Source: Oikopleura dioica | Lineage: Eukaryota > Animalia > Chordata | DNA: 64,000 nt | Reading direction: 5' to 3' | Assembly (NCBI GenBank): GCA_907165135.1 | Contig: OU015567.1 | Span: forward strand, 2,170,001-2,234,000 | In this document: piece by piece, positions 54,971 to 64,000 of the stretch | Numbering within the stretch: the stretch's first letter is position 1 | Layout of the letters: every line of letters begins with the position of its first letter | Notes under the pieces: generated by a model | The model's database searches: none | Seen by the model: the letters and a program-made list of their open reading frames with translations, nothing else | Told to the model about the DNA's origin: nothing | Position numbers and translations under genes: made by a program

Positions 54971-56150
54971 CTACAGTAAATTCTGCTCGAGCTTTTGAAG
55001 TGCAGCTGCGACTTGAGACATTGTCGAAGAATCATCAGATAGATCATCCTCATCTGAGAAGGATTGTTCATTTCGAGGACTAGAACTTTGACCAGCAGAT
55101 GGAGTTGGAGTTTGAAGGTATTTCTTGAGGATTTTTTGGCGTTTCTTCAATTTTTTGCTGAAGAAAAAATCAGAATTTTAAGAAAGTAAGAGTTTTTGAA
55201 AACGTACCATTCTGCCTCTTTCTCTGGCGATTTGAGTTCCTTCGATTTGAGCATGATTTCGATCCTTTCCAACAAAATCTGTCCAAGCTGATTTTGCGCG
55301 TCAACTTTCTTATCTTGTTGAAGCTTTGTTATTGTGTGTTCCAATTCTGCTTTGTAGCTCTCTGCCATCATTTTGTATTTAGCGACTTCTTTCTTCAATG
55401 CCTCAATTTGGTGTTTCGCGACTTCAAGGTTTCTACCGACGTTGTTTTGGAGCGCTAAGTTTTGCTTTAGCGACTTGTTTTCTTCCTTGATTGCAGTTGA
55501 ATCTGAACGGAGCTGGTTGATTTCTTTTTGGCAGCTTCGCATGTCTTTTTCGCTTTCACTCTTAAATTTCTAATAAGCGACAAATGATGCCTTGAAATGG
55601 TACCTTTACAAAAGAAATAGATTCAGCCAGCCGACCGGCTCGGATTTGCTCTGTTTCAAGCTTTTTCTGCAGATCGTTCTTTTCTTCTACGGCCTTTTCC
55701 AGCCTTGAGGAGAGATCAACATTTTCGTTTGTCAGATTATCTACTGTCTTATCAAGCTGACTGTTTTCTCGTTTCAGCGATTCGACTTTAGAGATGCTCT
55801 CTGTCGCGATTTTTGCCGACTTTTTGCAGCTTTTTTCCAAGTTTTCAATGTTCTACTTTGAGTTCATCATTATTTTCAATTTTTAACTGTATCGTTTATT
55901 CGAAATGTGAACTGCCTAACTGAGCATCCGAGAAGTTCTTATCGTATTGCTCCATTTGTTTGATGACGCTCATTGCCAGTGGAATATTTCGCTTTTCAAT
56001 GGCGAAACGAAGGTTTTGAAGAAGCTGGGAGCATGGATTTGGAGTTGGGTGATTCGTTTGTTCTTCGATAAAGGAAGGCGGGGGGAGAGCAGGGAGGACT
56101 AGGAGCGGGAGTGGAGGAAATAACGCGGCACTCGATCCGTTTCATCCCCT
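54971..56150 (-). CDS. Long coiled-coil protein, start uncertain
   Basis: Heptad-rich ORFs 55562-55840 and 55147-55542 separated by short introns; last exon ..VAAALQKLEQNLL stop at 54971-54973. Confidence 0.65.
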
Positions 56151-56391: not shown

Positions 56392-57531
56392 TTAGTTGGA
56401 AAACTGGATCCGAACAATTTCATTGACCCGGATTCTTGAATCTATTCGATCGCCGGCTTTTCGAAAGAAGACGACGGAATCGATTGCGCATTCGAACGTA
56501 TCATGTGGCTGAAAAGTGATGAAAAGGGGAAGGCTGATAGCTTCATTTACCTGTGGAACTATTGAATCAAAAAACCCTTCGGAGTTTCGAGGAAAAAAGC
56601 TGATTTCGACTTTCGGTTCTTTTCCAAAAATGGCTTTGATTCCGCCGATGAGCTGGTTTCGTGTATGATTGAAGGATGCAGAAGCAGTTTCGCTTCGTTT
56701 GAGCTTGGAAAGCTTGCCAGGACCCGCCTTAAAATCGCCAGTAAGAACTCGACCGCCTTCGAGATGAATCTCATCCCAGGTTCCGCATTCTCCGATTGAT
56801 TCTAAAAAGATGTTGACCAAAATGGGCAAACGACTGAAAGTCGTGAAGGGATTGTACCTTTTATTCGAGCGGTTGTTTTTTCATCAAAGCCAGTCCAAGA
56901 CTTTGGCAAGACCAACTCCGAAAACACCCTCATCGGAGATGGCGTTTGACGATGAACCCAGTTCATAAACTCTTTTGCCGAGAGAACTTCTGGCTGGATT
57001 CCGATGGCGTAGGTGATCTTCAGGTTCTCTTTGGGAAAAATGACGAAACAGGAGATCTTGTCTTTGGGAATAGAGAGTTTTTCGCGAAAGAGGCACATTT
57101 TATGACGCGTTTTTTCGAGGACGTTTGCGTGGATTAATTCTGGCGGCGTCGAGTTTTTCTAAAATAAAAAAGTCAAGGGGAAGAAGGAGGGTGACCCTTA
57201 CGTTTCTGATCTGCTTCCATTCTCCAGTCGGCGTCAATTCAAGAGTTCCCGTCCAGTTCTTCACTTCGAACAGCGTTATTTTATTCCTCTGCTCGAGAAC
57301 CAGATCAATTTCGAACCTCCCTTCTGTTCCAGGAATTCGCACTGCTTGTCTGACTTTGCCCAGCTTCTGCAATTCCCTCAACACCATTTCTTCGCCCTTC
57401 CTTCCCGCCTCGACATGGCCCATCTCGAAGCTCTGTTTTGGGTTCGCAGCGACTTTGACCTTTTCCATTCGTCCTTGAACGCGTTCCAGCGCGTTTCCGG
57501 ACTCGTTGTTTTCACCACTTCCAAAACACAT
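56392..57531 (-). CDS. NERD (PD-(D/E)xK nuclease-related) domain protein, three exons
   Basis: AGRKGEEMVLRELQ..RIP..GRFEIDLVL..ITLFEVKNWTG matches the NERD pattern (G..GE, EIDlv, EvKnw.G). A canonical intron (gtaagg..ttttag, ~57157-57200) gives HANVLEKTRHK..SCFVIFP; the C-terminal domain starts TWDEIHLEGGRVLTGDFK. Confidence 0.8.
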
Positions 57532-58240
57532 TTCGGAGATGTTTGATAAAGAAGGGATTTCAGGGAGAGCAACTTTTGGAATCTCTGGGCTCTATAATGG
57601 AAGCTCTTTTTAAGTGAGAAAATGGACTAATTTCAACTGTTATTGAGGCCAAAGGCCGAGAAAGGACGAAGCCCGAAAAAGGTGTCGTCTTCCTCGCCTT
57701 TTTTTTAAAGAGGGGGCTTCCCTCTTCCTCGGCCTATGGGCCATAGTCTCAAGCTTATTTTCTTACCGGAATTCGACTTGACGCGTAGCTGGAAACTGCT
57801 GAAGCTGTATCACTGAAAGATAGTGTTAGGTACCATATTTTGATGGCTTAAGAATATTTATCAAAGAAATGCAACTGTAGAAAGACCTTATTGTCTGATA
57901 GAATTGCTCGTAATAGGATGCGGGAGGGCTCTCGCTCTCAAGCTCTGGGGGTAGGTTTGCTCTATTGTTTTCACTTTGCGTCATTTTTTATCCACTTATG
58001 ATCATTCTAAATTGGCGATTATCAAGATTGATCTTTTGGCAATACAATAAGTCAGATTCTGTCTCTTTTTATCTGCGTTAAATGCTCCTGATTGAACAAA
58101 ATATGGATTATTTAAAATTTCTGTTTTTGCCAGACAAAAATAACCGTGATGCGAGCCAGACATGAAAACAATCATGTGACCATACAATTTTGTCCTTATA
58201 CCTGGATAAATATATTTTCTGCTTTAATTTCTGATATAAG

Positions 58241-59103: not shown

Positions 59104-62100
59104 TTAGTCGTATGACTGACCCGAGTTTGTGCCGATGTTTAGAGGTTCGACGGGCCTCGTTTCACGGTGTGCTCGTTTTGTATGTTTCGGGAGATGAGCT
59201 GCTCCAACTTCGGTTAAAGTCGCATTCGGATCGGCGCCGGCTGAGTATTGACGATCTGGTGAAGACTTTGGACGGGTTCTTTTCTTGCTGTTTTCAGTTG
59301 CTGAGCCCTCAACTACTGTTGAATTTTGTTTATCGACTGACATATGGCTATTGTCGGGCGCAGCAACCTCCGAAATCACTGTAGCATCAGCTGACATGTC
59401 CTCGGCAGTTTCATAAAGAGTACCACCAGAGTACCAGCGATCTGACGGCTCGGCTGGAGCTACCGACGAGTCCAAAATAGATGTAGCGGTTGTATCTCCC
59501 AGATTTTCCATGTCCAATCGGCGTCTACTTTCCAAAATAGGTGATAGAGATGATCTTGGCGGTTTTTCCATAGCAACCATCGGAGTCGACGCGACCTGAG
59601 AAGATTTCCTCCCCCCATGCGACTTCGACCCGGACTTTTCCATCGGTTTGGAAGTAGGAACAGGCGATTTTTGTGGGACTTTCGACTTAACGATTTCGGT
59701 TAAATGTGGGAATACGTACTCGGCCTCGTAGTAATCAATCCAGCGTAAGTCGTGATTTCGTTCTGCGGCGTGAACCACGTGTTCTCGATGGATGAAATCA
59801 CGTTGTCCTTTTTTATCTTCGACCATGACGACCCAGTCGTTGCTCGAAACGGCTTTCAGGGGACCTACCCAGCGTTCCTTCTTGCTTTTAGCGTCGGTCA
59901 GGTTTTCTCGCTTAATGTACACGACAGCGCCAGCGGGGATTGGTCTCGGCTTAGGCTCGTTTTTCAGCCTGTGCTCCATGGCTCGGTCAGCAGCTTCCAT
60001 CGCAGTTTTCACAATGGCTTCCGCCGATTTCGCTAAAGCTCCAACATTGAGACCAAACACCTGAGGTGTTTCCGCTGTCATTTCTGCGCCAGTAGAGTGG
60101 GTGAAAGTACTTTTTCGGCCAAACCAAACTTCTCGCGGTGAAATTTTCGTGCTTTTGTTTTTCACACTATTGAGCGCGCGCATCACGTGGGGAACGCAGT
60201 CGGCCCAAGTTTTTCGACCGGAAGATGAGTTGACCATGCAGAATAGACTGTTTTTGATAGTCCGATTCGCTCTTTCTGCGAAAGCGTTTGATTGAGGGTG
60301 AAATGCGGTACTTATTGTATGTTTTATCTGGTTAAGCTTACACATTTCGTCAATCACGCTTGCGCAGAAGTGGGTACCTCTGTCACTGTGTAGATGTTTC
60401 GGCAAGAAATCCATGGGAAGGAAGACCTTGTAGATGAGCGCTTTTGCAGCGCAGATAGCAGTGTCGGACCGCGTCGGAATGCACCAAGTGTAGCGAGAGA
60501 AAGTGTCCGCCACCACCAAATAATACTTGAATCCGCCAGCGGGAGGCATACAAGCGAAATCGATCTGAATCGATTCGCCAGCTGTTTTTCCACGACGAAG
60601 GGTTCCAAGTGGCGGTTTGGTACGAGTTCCAGCAGATCCTTTTCTGCGTAGGCAAGGGACGCAGCTGTGGACGTAGTTAGAAACATCGTCTTGAAATGAA
60701 GGCCACCAAACGTCCTCTAATCGCTCTAAAGTCCGCGGCTCGCCCAGATGACCGGACAAGTCGTGAGCTAGAAAGAGAAAGTGACTTTTTACCGCTTCCG
60801 GTACCACCGCCCGCGCGCCAGATTTGAATTGACACATCAAGCACCCGGTAGTGTTATCCAGGAACAGAGCTTTTTCCATCTTGAGTAGAGACGATTGTCG
60901 GTGGTCGGAGTCCTTCACCAGCGATTTTATGTCCAGTGGCTCCTTACCAGATTCCAGAAAAGTGATGATTGCACTCAGAGCAGAGTCCTCCCTTTGATAG
61001 TCCAGAATGTTATTATAATTCGCTGACACCAACGGAATCTCCATTGGCGCCGCGATAGCCTTGACGTTTACCTTATGTATCTTCACCTCTGATAAAGTGA
61101 TTTTCTCCGGAAACTGATTTTCGTTCCAGAAAGGGACGAAGACACGTACTGGTGAATTCTTGTCGATTTCGTACTCGCGACCAACGGGAAACTCAGAGTC
61201 GTATCCAAGTGATTTGTCGTCCTCGCCAGGTCTGCGGCTCATAAAATCGGCGAATTGATTTTCTGATCCCTTGATGTAGACAATGTGAAAATCGAATTCT
61301 TCCAATCGGCTTTGCCATCGGCTTATTTTAGAATTCTTGAACTTCTTTTTGTGTAGGAAGATCAAAGATCTGTGGTCTGTGTGAATCTGAAAGAATCTAC
61401 CTTTCAGGAGCTTTTCCAGTCGCTCGCAGCACCAGACAATGCTAAACATTTCCTTTTCTGAAGTGTTCCATTTTCTTTCAGCTTTGTTGAAGGTGTGGGA
61501 AATCGCGCTTACTAGGTGCACTCTCCCGCCATACTCTTGTAGCAGAACACCACCCGCTGCGTACAGGCTCGCGTCTGTGTAGAGGTGAAAAGACTCGTCA
61601 AAGTTAGGAAAGCTTATGACAGGAGTCTCGGAGAGTCGTCGTTGAATTTCCTTGAGCGCCAAATCCGCTTCTTTGGTCCACTTGAAACAATTTGTTTCGT
61701 TCGCCGAATTTCGAACATCGTTTATGGGTTTCATTCTGCTCGAGAAGCAACCGGATGAAATAGCTTCGCCCATTTTTGTTTCTAGAAAACCTCGGATCCA
61801 ATTCAATGACCCGATTAATGAAGCTAACTCCTTTTGGGAGCGTGGGGGTTTCATCTGACGAAGGGCGGAGACTTGCGCAGGGTCCGGTTTGATTCCTTCT
61901 TCGTTGATGATTCGGCCCAAAAAGTGAGCTTCTGATTGTAGGAAAGAGCACTTTTCGCCCTTGAGTTTAGCGTTAAACTTGCGGAGCGCGATGAATAGGT
62001 TTCGGAGAGTGTTGTAATAGCAGCTGAAAGACTTCCCAAAACATACTATGTCATCGATATAAGAAAGCATCTTCTTCCTGGTGGGGCTTGAGTCGAGAAT

Positions 62101-64000
62101 CGTGTTTACGACGCGCGAGAATATATTCCCCGAGCATCGATAACCGAAAGGTAATCTGCAGAAGGCGTAAGATTTCCCACCCCACTGGAAGGAAGTCTTA
62201 TACCTATCGCTTTTCTTAATAGGGCACTGCCAATATCCGCTCCGCAAATCAACTGTGGCGAAATACTTGTTGCCCGGTCCAATGTTCGCGATCGTATCCT
62301 CCATGCTCGGAAGATGATATGGGTCGGATTTGTCGGAGAGGCATTTGTTCAAGCTGTTCTTGTAGTTGATGCAGAAGCGCATTTCCCCAGATTTCTTAGG
62401 GATTGGCAGAACGGGGCTATTAAACCCTTTCTGGTCCTTGATCTCTTCTATTATTTTCGTATCGAGCAGTTCGGAGATGTGATCAGTGACCTGGCCATGA
62501 AAAGCTTGCGGAATAGGGTGTTGACTGATGTTTCGACTCGTACCATCAGTCGGGATTTCGATCTCGAATGGGAATTCACCCATTTTTTGACCGTCGCAGC
62601 CGAATCTGTCGTCGAAATCCAAACACAGCTCGGCGACCACCTTCTTTTGCCCCGGGTCGGCGTTTGCTGGTAGGGTAATTCCGAGTTTTTGCTTCGCTAG
62701 CTGAATGGGGCACCTGGCTGCGTTCTTGTTAGGTGCGTCCAGCTTTGGGACTTTTGGTGGCGGTTGAGTGCGGGATCGATCGCTATCCTTGACCGCTGAT
62801 CTAGTAGTCAAGTATTTCTTGATTTTGGTCCGCTTCACTCCGTCCAGCTTCACCACTTGAGTCTCAGTTTGTGTGAAGGCTTCGTTGTAGCAAAATGAGA
62901 GAGTACGATTCTTATTGTCGACTGTGAAGCTGTCCGTCATCGCATTCTCTAGTATATCGCGGCCCAGTAGACTTGGGTATTTACTGCCTGGCATAATGGT
63001 GAGATTCAGGGAGAATGCAGGGCCACCATTGAATGATAAGCGGCAGGGAAGGATACCCATCGGCTGCTCGGCGGGAATATTTGGGCTGAAACCGGTGACC
63101 TTGAAGGGACAGGGCTTCAGCATCTGGAGAAATTCGTCGGGAACGTAAGCAGCGGACAGACAGGAGGACTCGGCTCCGCTGTCGACTTCCATCGATACGT
63201 CAAAACTTTTAGAGCCCGTAATGATGGTAGCCGAAGCGAAATAAGCCTTTCCTGGTCGCTTCTTCTTCACTGTGTAAAAGTGAACGTCGAATGGTTGGAA
63301 ATCTTCAACGTTCTTAGTCGTATTTATCTTCTTGGATTCTGGTTGTTTATCGTCTTTCCCATCCTTAGAATCGTTGCTGGCGCGCTTAGCATTCTTCTTC
63401 TTTTTGTTCTTATTTCTGTTGAAGTGCTGGGAGACGGTCGCGCTGTCAACTCGATTCTGTCTTGTGGATTGGGCGAGACGGCAGAGTTCGTTGATATCGT
63501 AAACTTTTGATAGGCTTGGAAGGATTGCGTTGAAAACGTCTGGTTCTTCTTTCCTAAGATTCAAGTACAGCATCATCGTCGAGAATATGTCAAATATTTC
63601 ATCGACCCCGGCGTCGGCTGACTTCTCTTGTCGGTAAGAGTTCAAAGTCGCTTGCTTCGCCTCGTTCATCTTTTGCAAGACGTTGGCGGTGTAGTGTGCA
63701 AACGGCTTCGAATGGTCGTATTCGACGTCGAAAACTTCGCTTAGCTTCAGTAAGTAGTGACTCTTCGCGGCGAATGATTTCTCTAGCAGCGCCTTGGCCG
63801 ATTTCCAGTCTTGACAATTCAGAAATTCGGTTCCAAGTGAGCGTTCGATGTTCAAGTCGAAGTGGCTGTACACTGCTGCGATGAAAGGCTGTTCACGTGA
63901 AGGTCTGTCGCGGACGTAGGCGCGGTGATAAATGTCGGCTCTGCCCAAGAAGGTGTTGAAAGATGTGTTGCATGCGGCGTCCAGCTTCGGCAAGTCTTGG
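59104..64000 (-). CDS. Ty3/gypsy gag-pol polyprotein, single uninterrupted ORF, 5' end beyond window
   Basis: Gag-like helical region; protease VDSGA; RT RFCINYK, DLRSGYWQ, LPFG, YIDD; RNase H YTDAS, EKE, TDH; integrase HDLSGH..CVPC, QIDF, SDRG, ERANRTIK; GPY/F-like WVGPL; order PR-RT-RH-IN. Confidence 0.97.
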   Translation of the reverse strand, partial: QDLPKLDAACNTSFNTFLGRADIYHRAYVRDRPSREQPFIAAVYSHFDLNIERSLGTEFLNCQDWKSAKALLEKSFAAKSHYLLKLSEVFDVEYDHSKPFAHYTANVLQKMNEAKQATLNSYRQEKSADAGVDEIFDIFSTMMLYLNLRKEEPDVFNAILPSLSKVYDINELCRLAQSTRQNRVDSATVSQHFNRNKNKKKKNAKRASNDSKDGKDDKQPESKKINTTKNVEDFQPFDVHFYTVKKKRPGKAYFASATIITGSKSFDVSMEVDSGAESSCLSAAYVPDEFLQMLKPCPFKVTGFSPNIPAEQPMGILPCRLSFNGGPAFSLNLTIMPGSKYPSLLGRDILENAMTDSFTVDNKNRTLSFCYNEAFTQTETQVVKLDGVKRTKIKKYLTTRSAVKDSDRSRTQPPPKVPKLDAPNKNAARCPIQLAKQKLGITLPANADPGQKKVVAELCLDFDDRFGCDGQKMGEFPFEIEIPTDGTSRNISQHPIPQAFHGQVTDHISELLDTKIIEEIKDQKGFNSPVLPIPKKSGEMRFCINYKNSLNKCLSDKSDPYHLPSMEDTIANIGPGNKYFATVDLRSGYWQCPIKKSDRYKTSFQWGGKSYAFCRLPFGYRCSGNIFSRVVNTILDSSPTRKKMLSYIDDIVCFGKSFSCYYNTLRNLFIALRKFNAKLKGEKCSFLQSEAHFLGRIINEEGIKPDPAQVSALRQMKPPRSQKELASLIGSLNWIRGFLETKMGEAISSGCFSSRMKPINDVRNSANETNCFKWTKEADLALKEIQRRLSETPVISFPNFDESFHLYTDASLYAAGGVLLQEYGGRVHLVSAISHTFNKAERKWNTSEKEMFSIVWCCERLEKLLKGRFFQIHTDHRSLIFLHKKKFKNSKISRWQSRLEEFDFHIVYIKGSENQFADFMSRRPGEDDKSLGYDSEFPVGREYEIDKNSPVRVFVPFWNENQFPEKITLSEVKIHKVNVKAIAAPMEIPLVSANYNNILDYQREDSALSAIITFLESGKEPLDIKSLVKDSDHRQSSLLKMEKALFLDNTTGCLMCQFKSGARAVVPEAVKSHFLFLAHDLSGHLGEPRTLERLEDVWWPSFQDDVSNYVHSCVPCLRRKGSAGTRTKPPLGTLRRGKTAGESIQIDFACMPPAGGFKYYLVVADTFSRYTWCIPTRSDTAICAAKALIYKVFLPMDFLPKHLHSDRGTHFCASVIDEMCKLNQIKHTISTAFHPQSNAFAERANRTIKNSLFCMVNSSSGRKTWADCVPHVMRALNSVKNKSTKISPREVWFGRKSTFTHSTGAEMTAETPQVFGLNVGALAKSAEAIVKTAMEAADRAMEHRLKNEPKPRPIPAGAVVYIKRENLTDAKSKKERWVGPLKAVSSNDWVVMVEDKKGQRDFIHREHVVHAAERNHDLRWIDYYEAEYVFPHLTEIVKSKVPQKSPVPTSKPMEKSGSKSHGGRKSSQVASTPMVAMEKPPRSSLSPILESRRRLDMENLGDTTATSILDSSVAPAEPSDRWYSGGTLYETAEDMSADATVISEVAAPDNSHMSVDKQNSTVVEGSATENSKKRTRPKSSPDRQYSAGADPNATLTEVGAAHLPKHTKRAHRETRPVEPLNIGTNSGQSYD

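Follow-up and report, generated by a model that had tools for sequence, protein, structure and literature searches.

An intron-bearing NERD domain gene of Oikopleura dioica belongs to a two-domain family shared by bacteria, streptophytes, and animals and was probably inherited vertically

Introduction

How did a tunicate come to carry an intron-bearing gene for a NERD nuclease? The NERD family (Pfam PF08378) is a family of PD-(D/E)xK nucleases (Grynberg and Godzik 2004). The domain has been listed as bacterial in a review (PMC3424549) and described as a bacterial domain with few exceptions in plants or archaea (PMC12702573, PMC3424549); in our search of the literature, no paper dealt with a NERD family of animals. 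The gene considered here lies in a 64,000-nucleotide stretch of the Oikopleura dioica contig OU015567.1 (assembly GCA_907165135.1, positions 2,170,001 to 2,234,000), hereafter the window, and a preliminary description of it raised the prospect of a nuclease that was either horizontally acquired or patchily retained. Here we document the structure of the gene, its family membership, the conservation of its residues, the purifying selection acting on it, and its distribution. We consider it likely that it is a functional six-exon gene coding for a two-domain NERD nuclease of ~400 aa, which belongs to an old family and has been inherited vertically within animals. The Oikopleura gene and its NERD label are already public, the Bergen orthologue (E4XUT4_OIKDI/CBY13481.1) being named "NERD domain-containing protein" in UniProt. 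What is new is a corrected gene model, a two-domain subfamily extending across bacteria, streptophytes, and animals, and the loss of catalytic residues in sharks.

Gene structure and neighboring annotations

The NERD gene occupies 57984-56392 on the minus strand of the window and comprises six coding exons and five introns, with a product of ~400 aa (Table 1). The public model Oidioi.mRNA.OKI2018_I69.chr2.g4476.t1 (651 aa; P0039) has exons 100% identical to the window, and its residues 1-389 match exactly in six pieces (57984-57887, 57812-57767, 57591-57202, 57158-56858, 56801-56551, and 56508-56428), which identifies the window as part of chromosome 2 of the Okinawa O. dioica reference. A transcript-derived orthologue of 389 aa (P0001; 83-85% identical), recovered from transcript-sized contigs, is colinear with the coding blocks recognized in the preliminary description. 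It has 59 more N-terminal residues than the model proposed there and is free of 14 residues that this model had read through intron 5. The contig that encodes P0001 (L034) comes from another O. dioica lineage and, set against the Bergen genome locus (L035), is a spliced sequence; the exons of the window are colinear with it. Analyses at full length drew on two database proteins, P0039 for this gene and P0001 for the orthologue.

These comparisons revise the gene as initially delimited at 56392-57531. Its stop codon (56394-56392) stands, but its start does not, since 57531 is the internal Met69 and the true ATG lies at 57984. The exact match to P0039 and the colinearity of P0001 reveal that the first two exons (57984-57887 and 57812-57767) and 60 bases of the third (up to 57591) had been missed. 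Within the exon initially taken as the last, a 42-nt intron (56550-56509) had been translated as 14 residues. The claim of spliceosomal introns is borne out by the five short GT-AG introns of the revised model.

Table 1. Features of the NERD gene and its downstream neighbor in the window
Feature	Position	Strand	Evidence and remarks
Coding exon 1, residues 1-32 plus two bases of codon 33	57887..57984	-	ATG at 57984; exact match to P0039 residues 1-32; same N terminus in orthologous transcript P0001/L034
Intron 1, 74 nt, GT..AG	57813..57886	-	Between exact P0039 matches; GT donor at 57886-57885 read in the sequence
Coding exon 2, residues 33-48	57767..57812	-	Exact P0039 match; aligns with cDNA L034 positions 95-132
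Intron 2, 175 nt, GT..AG	57592..57766	-	Splice sites in the sequence; boundaries of P0039 matches
Coding exon 3, residues 49-178	57202..57591	-	First two thirds of NERD (from ~57405) with GE, EID, and EVK; exact P0039 match
Intron 3, 43 nt, GT..AG	57159..57201	-	Splice sites and P0039; homology of metagenomic fragment P0002 ends after KQIR, one residue before the junction
Coding exon 4, residues 179-278 plus one base	56858..57158	-	End of NERD (to ~57033) and helical linker; exact P0039 match
Intron 4, 56 nt, GT..AG, phase 1	56802..56857	-	Splice sites and boundaries of P0039 matches
Coding exon 5, residues 279-362	56551..56801	-	C-terminal barrel domain begins here (TWDEIHLEGGRVLTGDF, from ~56781); exact P0039 match
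Intron 5, 42 nt, in frame, no stop, GTAAAT..TTTCAG	56509..56550	-	Not present in P0039, in P0001/P0041/P0043, or in any relative
Coding exon 6, residues 363-400 plus stop	56392..56508	-	TAA at 56394-56392; end of C-terminal domain; P0039 departs at 56428
Downstream coiled-coil gene, outside the NERD feature	54974..55852	-	P0039 residues 390-651 map here; a separate 328-aa gene in Bergen

At the 3' end the public Okinawa model g4476 jumps from 56428 to 55852, into a coiled-coil protein, and thereby drops the last 11 NERD codons and the stop. The true product would then be a 651-aa fusion of the downstream coiled-coil protein to a NERD protein shorn of its last 11 residues, which is the structure of a public model that matches the window exactly. 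However, the reading frame continues through those 11 codons to the TAA at 56392, and the resulting C terminus (..VNEIVRIQFSN) agrees with the end of P0001 and has close variants in two further transcript-derived orthologues (P0041 and P0043). Moreover, the C-terminal domain would lose its last strand in the fusion, and the downstream part is annotated as a gene of its own in Bergen. We therefore consider the fusion very unlikely, regard the 651-aa model as probably chimeric, and read the NERD protein as 400 aa, with the coiled-coil gene probably separate. In the Bergen annotation, the NERD protein (354 aa) seems to be truncated directly after ..IVPQ, where intron 5 is situated.

A minus-strand ORF of 1629 aa (window 59104-63993) directly upstream of the NERD gene displays motifs of the Ty3/gypsy type (protease, reverse transcriptase, RNase H, and integrase-like). 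We rejected the NERD gene as a part of this element, as the pol ORF reaches no further than 59104 and the orthologue in Bergen is preceded by P450 genes instead.

The NERD domain and its catalytic residues

Searched against the Pfam NERD profile (PF08378), the 57531-57202 part of exon 3 alone was recovered with an E value of 3.3e-10 and 40.9 bits, above the gathering cut-off of 22.1, over profile positions 1-71 of 111, in agreement with the initial assignment. The orthologue P0001 scores 53.4 bits over positions 2-111, in a match that spans the junction of exons 3 and 4, and an NCBIfam search with the NERD-bearing block returned weak echoes of YraN-type PD-(D/E)xK domains. The GE, EID, and EVK residues, reported as intact from the outset, are present in the window protein, which further carries the NWxG and WxQ motifs of the NERD family. 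Across the aligned family, 53 of 56 rows retain the catalytic E, D, E, and K, the window protein among them; the rows with an incomplete set are two sharks (P0092 and P0127) and a relative (P0093). In the shark orthologues, which are ~270 aa in length, the NERD motifs carry other residues (EIS/D.R) in place of the catalytic D, E, and K and the TWD..GD domain (see below) is kept, a sequence pattern suggesting that they may be pseudo-nucleases.

An AF2 model of P0001 computed from the 56-row family alignment attained a pLDDT of 87.7 and a pTM of 0.77, with residues 1-10 and 33-49, at the ends of the N-terminal tail, below a pLDDT of 50. Its residues 93-248 match PD-(D/E)xK nucleases, namely, Can2 (7bdv; Z 8.7, rmsd 3.0 over 118 residues), VC1899 (Z 8.3), and AF1548 (Z 8.1), in alignments covering 112-118 residues, with further fold matches to McrC, NucS, and Hjc; Foldseek on the model of the NERD protein agrees weakly with the nuclease assignment. 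On the model of this orthologue, the domain is thus predicted to adopt the restriction-endonuclease-like α/β fold.

A putative C-terminal barrel domain shared across the family

The region C terminal to the NERD domain constitutes a domain of ~115 aa common to the family, distinguished by a TWD-x5-GG[RK]-x3-GD motif and a terminal F[RH]xAG strand. Across the 56 family members, the W, D, G, and D of this motif vary little or not at all. The preliminary description had attributed this domain (TWDEIHLEGG..GDF) to plant/protist-type NERD proteins as well, and we indeed found it in the plant-lineage NERD proteins of Selaginella, Diphasiastrum, and Coleochaete. It has no Pfam model and no match by sequence in the PDB. 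The last exon block, a 135-aa query, had no match in Pfam, NCBIfam, the PDB, a word search, or the Atlas, the word search being unable to see full-length relatives of such a piece.

Folded alone, the domain attained a pLDDT of 90.3. Its best structural matches are Sm/Hfq/SH3-like and WYL barrels, all of them weak and none significant (Z ≤ 4.9); those to Hfq reach Z 4.0-4.2 over ~50 residues, and the Foldseek E-values are ≥ 0.12. These matches suggest that the domain is built around a small Sm/SH3-like β-barrel, and nucleic acid binding by this barrel is a guess from the common fold. Separately, a structure search of the ESM Atlas returned a stand-alone bacterial family of 138-aa proteins (145 members, most commonly from Thermodesulfobacteriota) with a TM score of 0.54 to the domain. 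The like predicted fold of this family suggests that the domain also exists on its own.

Phyletic distribution

With the NERD exon as the query, an exhaustive HMMER search recovered only 24 proteins at an E value of 0.001 or better, the best being P0001. Among animals, the family is represented in ascidians (Ciona intestinalis, Phallusia mammillata, Styela clava, and Clavelina lepadiformis), sharks (Chiloscyllium, Cetorhinus, and Mustelus), echinoderms (the sea urchins Strongylocentrotus and Lytechinus and the starfish Asterias), the hemichordate Saccoglossus, and corals (four species of Acropora), and these orthologues are full-length and possess the same two-domain architecture as the Oikopleura protein. 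Streptophyte members come from Selaginella, Diphasiastrum, and Coleochaete, and an ESM Atlas structure search retrieved a 62-member cluster of NERD proteins from streptophytes (TM 0.71); there are also GC-rich algal-like sequences. The bacterial members derive from Vibrio, Thiomicrorhabdus, Acidithiobacillus, Planctomycetota, Hydrogenedentota, Omnitrophota, and others.

Gene structures differ among the animal orthologues. That of Clavelina is a single exon (L001 6001-6993) on a 24.6-Mb chromosome, flanked by genes for malonyl-CoA decarboxylase and L7Ae; that of Saccoglossus (L040 5001-7487) has three introns; and that of Oikopleura has five introns at other positions. Intron positions appear not to be common to the three.

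Phylogeny and origin of the animal genes

In an unrooted IQ-TREE phylogeny of 63 rows, from which two very long bacterial rows were left out and in which the bacterial sampling was pattern and word based, bacteria and eukaryotes are split with a support of 100/100. Animals group together at 88/72, and animals minus the appendicularians at 100/98. Within the latter, a coral-containing group (96/92) and a deuterostome group (95/90) are recovered; echinoderms, ascidians, and sharks each form a clade, with the sharks paired with the ascidians. The four appendicularian rows are united with a support of 100/100 and branch at the base of the animals, apart from the ascidians, on a branch of length 1.1. 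Forcing them together with the ascidians costs 17.5 log-likelihood units (AU p 0.085), such that tunicate monophyly is not rejected, though not far from it. We attribute the basal placement to the long branch.

These results bear directly on the lead offered by the preliminary description, namely, a recent horizontal transfer, from bacteria or algae to Oikopleura or the larvaceans, of a NERD gene that later gained introns. It is in keeping with the treatment of NERD as essentially bacterial in the literature (PMC3424549; PMC12702573) and with the long appendicularian branch, which lies apart from the ascidians in the free tree. However, corals, echinoderms, a hemichordate, ascidians, and sharks all possess two-domain orthologues, and four further animal phyla or subphyla are represented among the orthologues. 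All of the animals fall on the eukaryotic side of the 100/100 split, far from bacteria, tunicate monophyly stands as an acceptable alternative, and the Clavelina copy resides in its 24.6-Mb chromosome amid ordinary animal genes. The animal orthologues broadly follow the species tree, the very pattern that the preliminary description had itself taken as speaking against acquisition. We consider a recent transfer extremely improbable. The tree, the distribution of orthologues, and the differing gene structures together fit vertical descent within animals, which would have been accompanied by fast evolution and intron turnover in Oikopleura. A patchily retained gene, the other prospect raised initially, is possible.

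A deeper question is how eukaryotes acquired the family. The eukaryotic members might stem from one or a few very old bacterial transfers, for example, into an early animal and the green lineage, instead of from the last eukaryotic common ancestor. In support of such transfers, few eukaryotic groups occur among the named matches (animals, streptophytes, and the GC-rich algal-like sequences), the Clavelina copy is a single exon, and the mobile-element and defense contexts of bacterial members (see below) favor transfer. Against this, a 100/100 branch of the unrooted tree sets the eukaryotes apart from the bacteria, such that a single origin suffices, although eukaryote monophyly could break with denser bacterial sampling. 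Such old transfers are a reasonable possibility, albeit not the one that we expect. Both an old-transfer and an ancestral-eukaryote history entail vertical inheritance of the Oikopleura gene within animals.

Selection and expression

Compared codon by codon and exon by exon with the L034 lineage, the window gene has a pN of 0.10 and a pS of 0.77, the latter being saturated. This disparity indicates that the coding sequence has been under strong purifying selection between two deeply split O. dioica lineages. In four RNA runs labeled as O. dioica, 4-10 reads per run fit the gene partly (window 57480-57573 and 57950-58043), with a likeness of 90-95%, and the overhangs of these reads match the Bergen-type cDNA L034 with one mismatch in 30 letters and none in 11. 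Given this level of likeness and the matching overhangs, the reads show that the orthologue is expressed in another, deeply diverged lineage and do not represent the allele of the window. An apparent joint from 57564 to 57958 in these reads was discarded as a splice junction for the lineage of the window. Splicing and expression of the window gene are predicted from the public model and the orthologues.

Gene neighborhoods of the bacterial homologues

In Vibrio sp. WXL210 (L003 4800-11760) and Vibrio breoganii (L036 1-7957), the homologue is located in or beside a CRISPR-Cas locus with genes for Cas_NE0113, Cas1, Cas2, Cas_VVA1548, RAMP, and Cmr5/Cmr proteins, a type III-like complement. A general CRISPR association was rejected, as cas genes occur in 2 of the 34 bacterial loci searched. 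At two other loci (L038 1494-8711 and L039 152-7984), the homologue is embedded in a mobile-element-like block together with genes for tyrosine integrase, RecD2-like helicase, DnaG-type primase, ERCC4, DUF669, and AAA_24, and at one locus it lies among housekeeping genes. PADLOC assigned no system; it returned weak matches to PglW and MkoA, in the N-terminal parts of these proteins that resemble NERD. NERD domains have been linked generally with defense islands (bioRxiv 10.64898/2026.09.30.754977), a link with which these neighborhoods agree while defining no system.

Predicted function and comparison with known systems

For catalysis, substrate, and biological role, we infer the following from the above observations. 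The protein has three parts, namely, a poorly conserved N-terminal tail, a NERD PD-(D/E)xK domain with a complete catalytic set, and the C-terminal barrel domain. The NERD domain is predicted to be a divalent-metal-dependent endonuclease that employs the E of GE, the D of EID, and the E and K of EVK. The barrel might bind or position single-stranded nucleic acid, be it DNA or RNA, or might bind a ligand or regulate the active site. The role of the enzyme could lie in defense against foreign or mobile nucleic acid or in nucleic acid processing. The Oikopleura lineage would have gained its own introns and evolved fast.

A more specific proposal is that the NERD-plus-barrel protein is a bacterial defense-type nuclease that animals and streptophytes have kept as a genome-defense or antiviral effector, with sharks keeping a catalytically dead version. 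We consider this unlikely as it stands. If true, such an effector would have been overlooked because there is no named match from a standard model animal.

At the level of the locus, the outcome is a corrected gene model and the removal of the grounds for horizontal transfer. More broadly, a NERD nuclease with its partner domain, common to bacteria, streptophytes, and animals from corals to sharks, is older and wider than the NERD literature implies. The family is a tractable uncharacterized candidate among the nucleases common to bacterial defense loci and eukaryotes, for which Ciona and sea urchins offer experimental systems.

Three known systems provide points of comparison. The best structural matches of the nuclease domain are the type III CRISPR ancillary nucleases Can2, Card1, and Can1 (7bdv, 6wxw, and 6sce; Z 6.7-8.7), and two Vibrio homologues adjoin type III-like cas genes. 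However, the Oikopleura protein has no sequence similarity to them and lacks their CARF sensor (Pfam and PADLOC searches for a CARF domain found none beyond the nuclease part), and its small barrel follows the nuclease instead of preceding it. It is hence not one of the CARF-nuclease CRISPR effectors, in which a CARF or SAVED domain is fused to a nuclease.

The second system is TbLrRP2 of Trypanosoma brucei, a eukaryotic NERD protein that acts on RNA and depends on charged catalytic residues (PMC12702573). As it shows that a eukaryotic NERD protein can work on RNA, we leave the substrate of the Oikopleura protein as DNA or RNA. By analogy, this protein might be an RNA endonuclease for RNA processing and not a DNase or defense nuclease. 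The NERD domain of TbLrRP2 is required for rRNA fragmentation (PMC12702573), and the C-terminal barrel of the Oikopleura protein is most like the Hfq/Sm RNA binders. Against this, the fold matches of the barrel are weak, the bacterial neighborhoods point to defense or mobile elements, and the Oikopleura protein has no transmembrane segment of the TbLrRP2 kind. TbLrRP2 further differs in being kinetoplastid specific and finding only bacterial relatives, besides possessing that C-terminal transmembrane segment (PMC12702573). It is not among the family matches recovered here and, judged by its published description, lacks the TWD..GD domain (PMC12702573). We hold the RNA-processing alternative as possible but somewhat doubtful.

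The third comparison is with the NERD family (PF08378) at large, with which the Oikopleura protein shares the HMM match, the E/D/ExK catalytic residues, the NWxG and WxQ motifs, and the predicted restriction-endonuclease-like fold. It differs in that the Oikopleura subfamily adds the ~115-aa C-terminal barrel and is widespread in animals and streptophytes.
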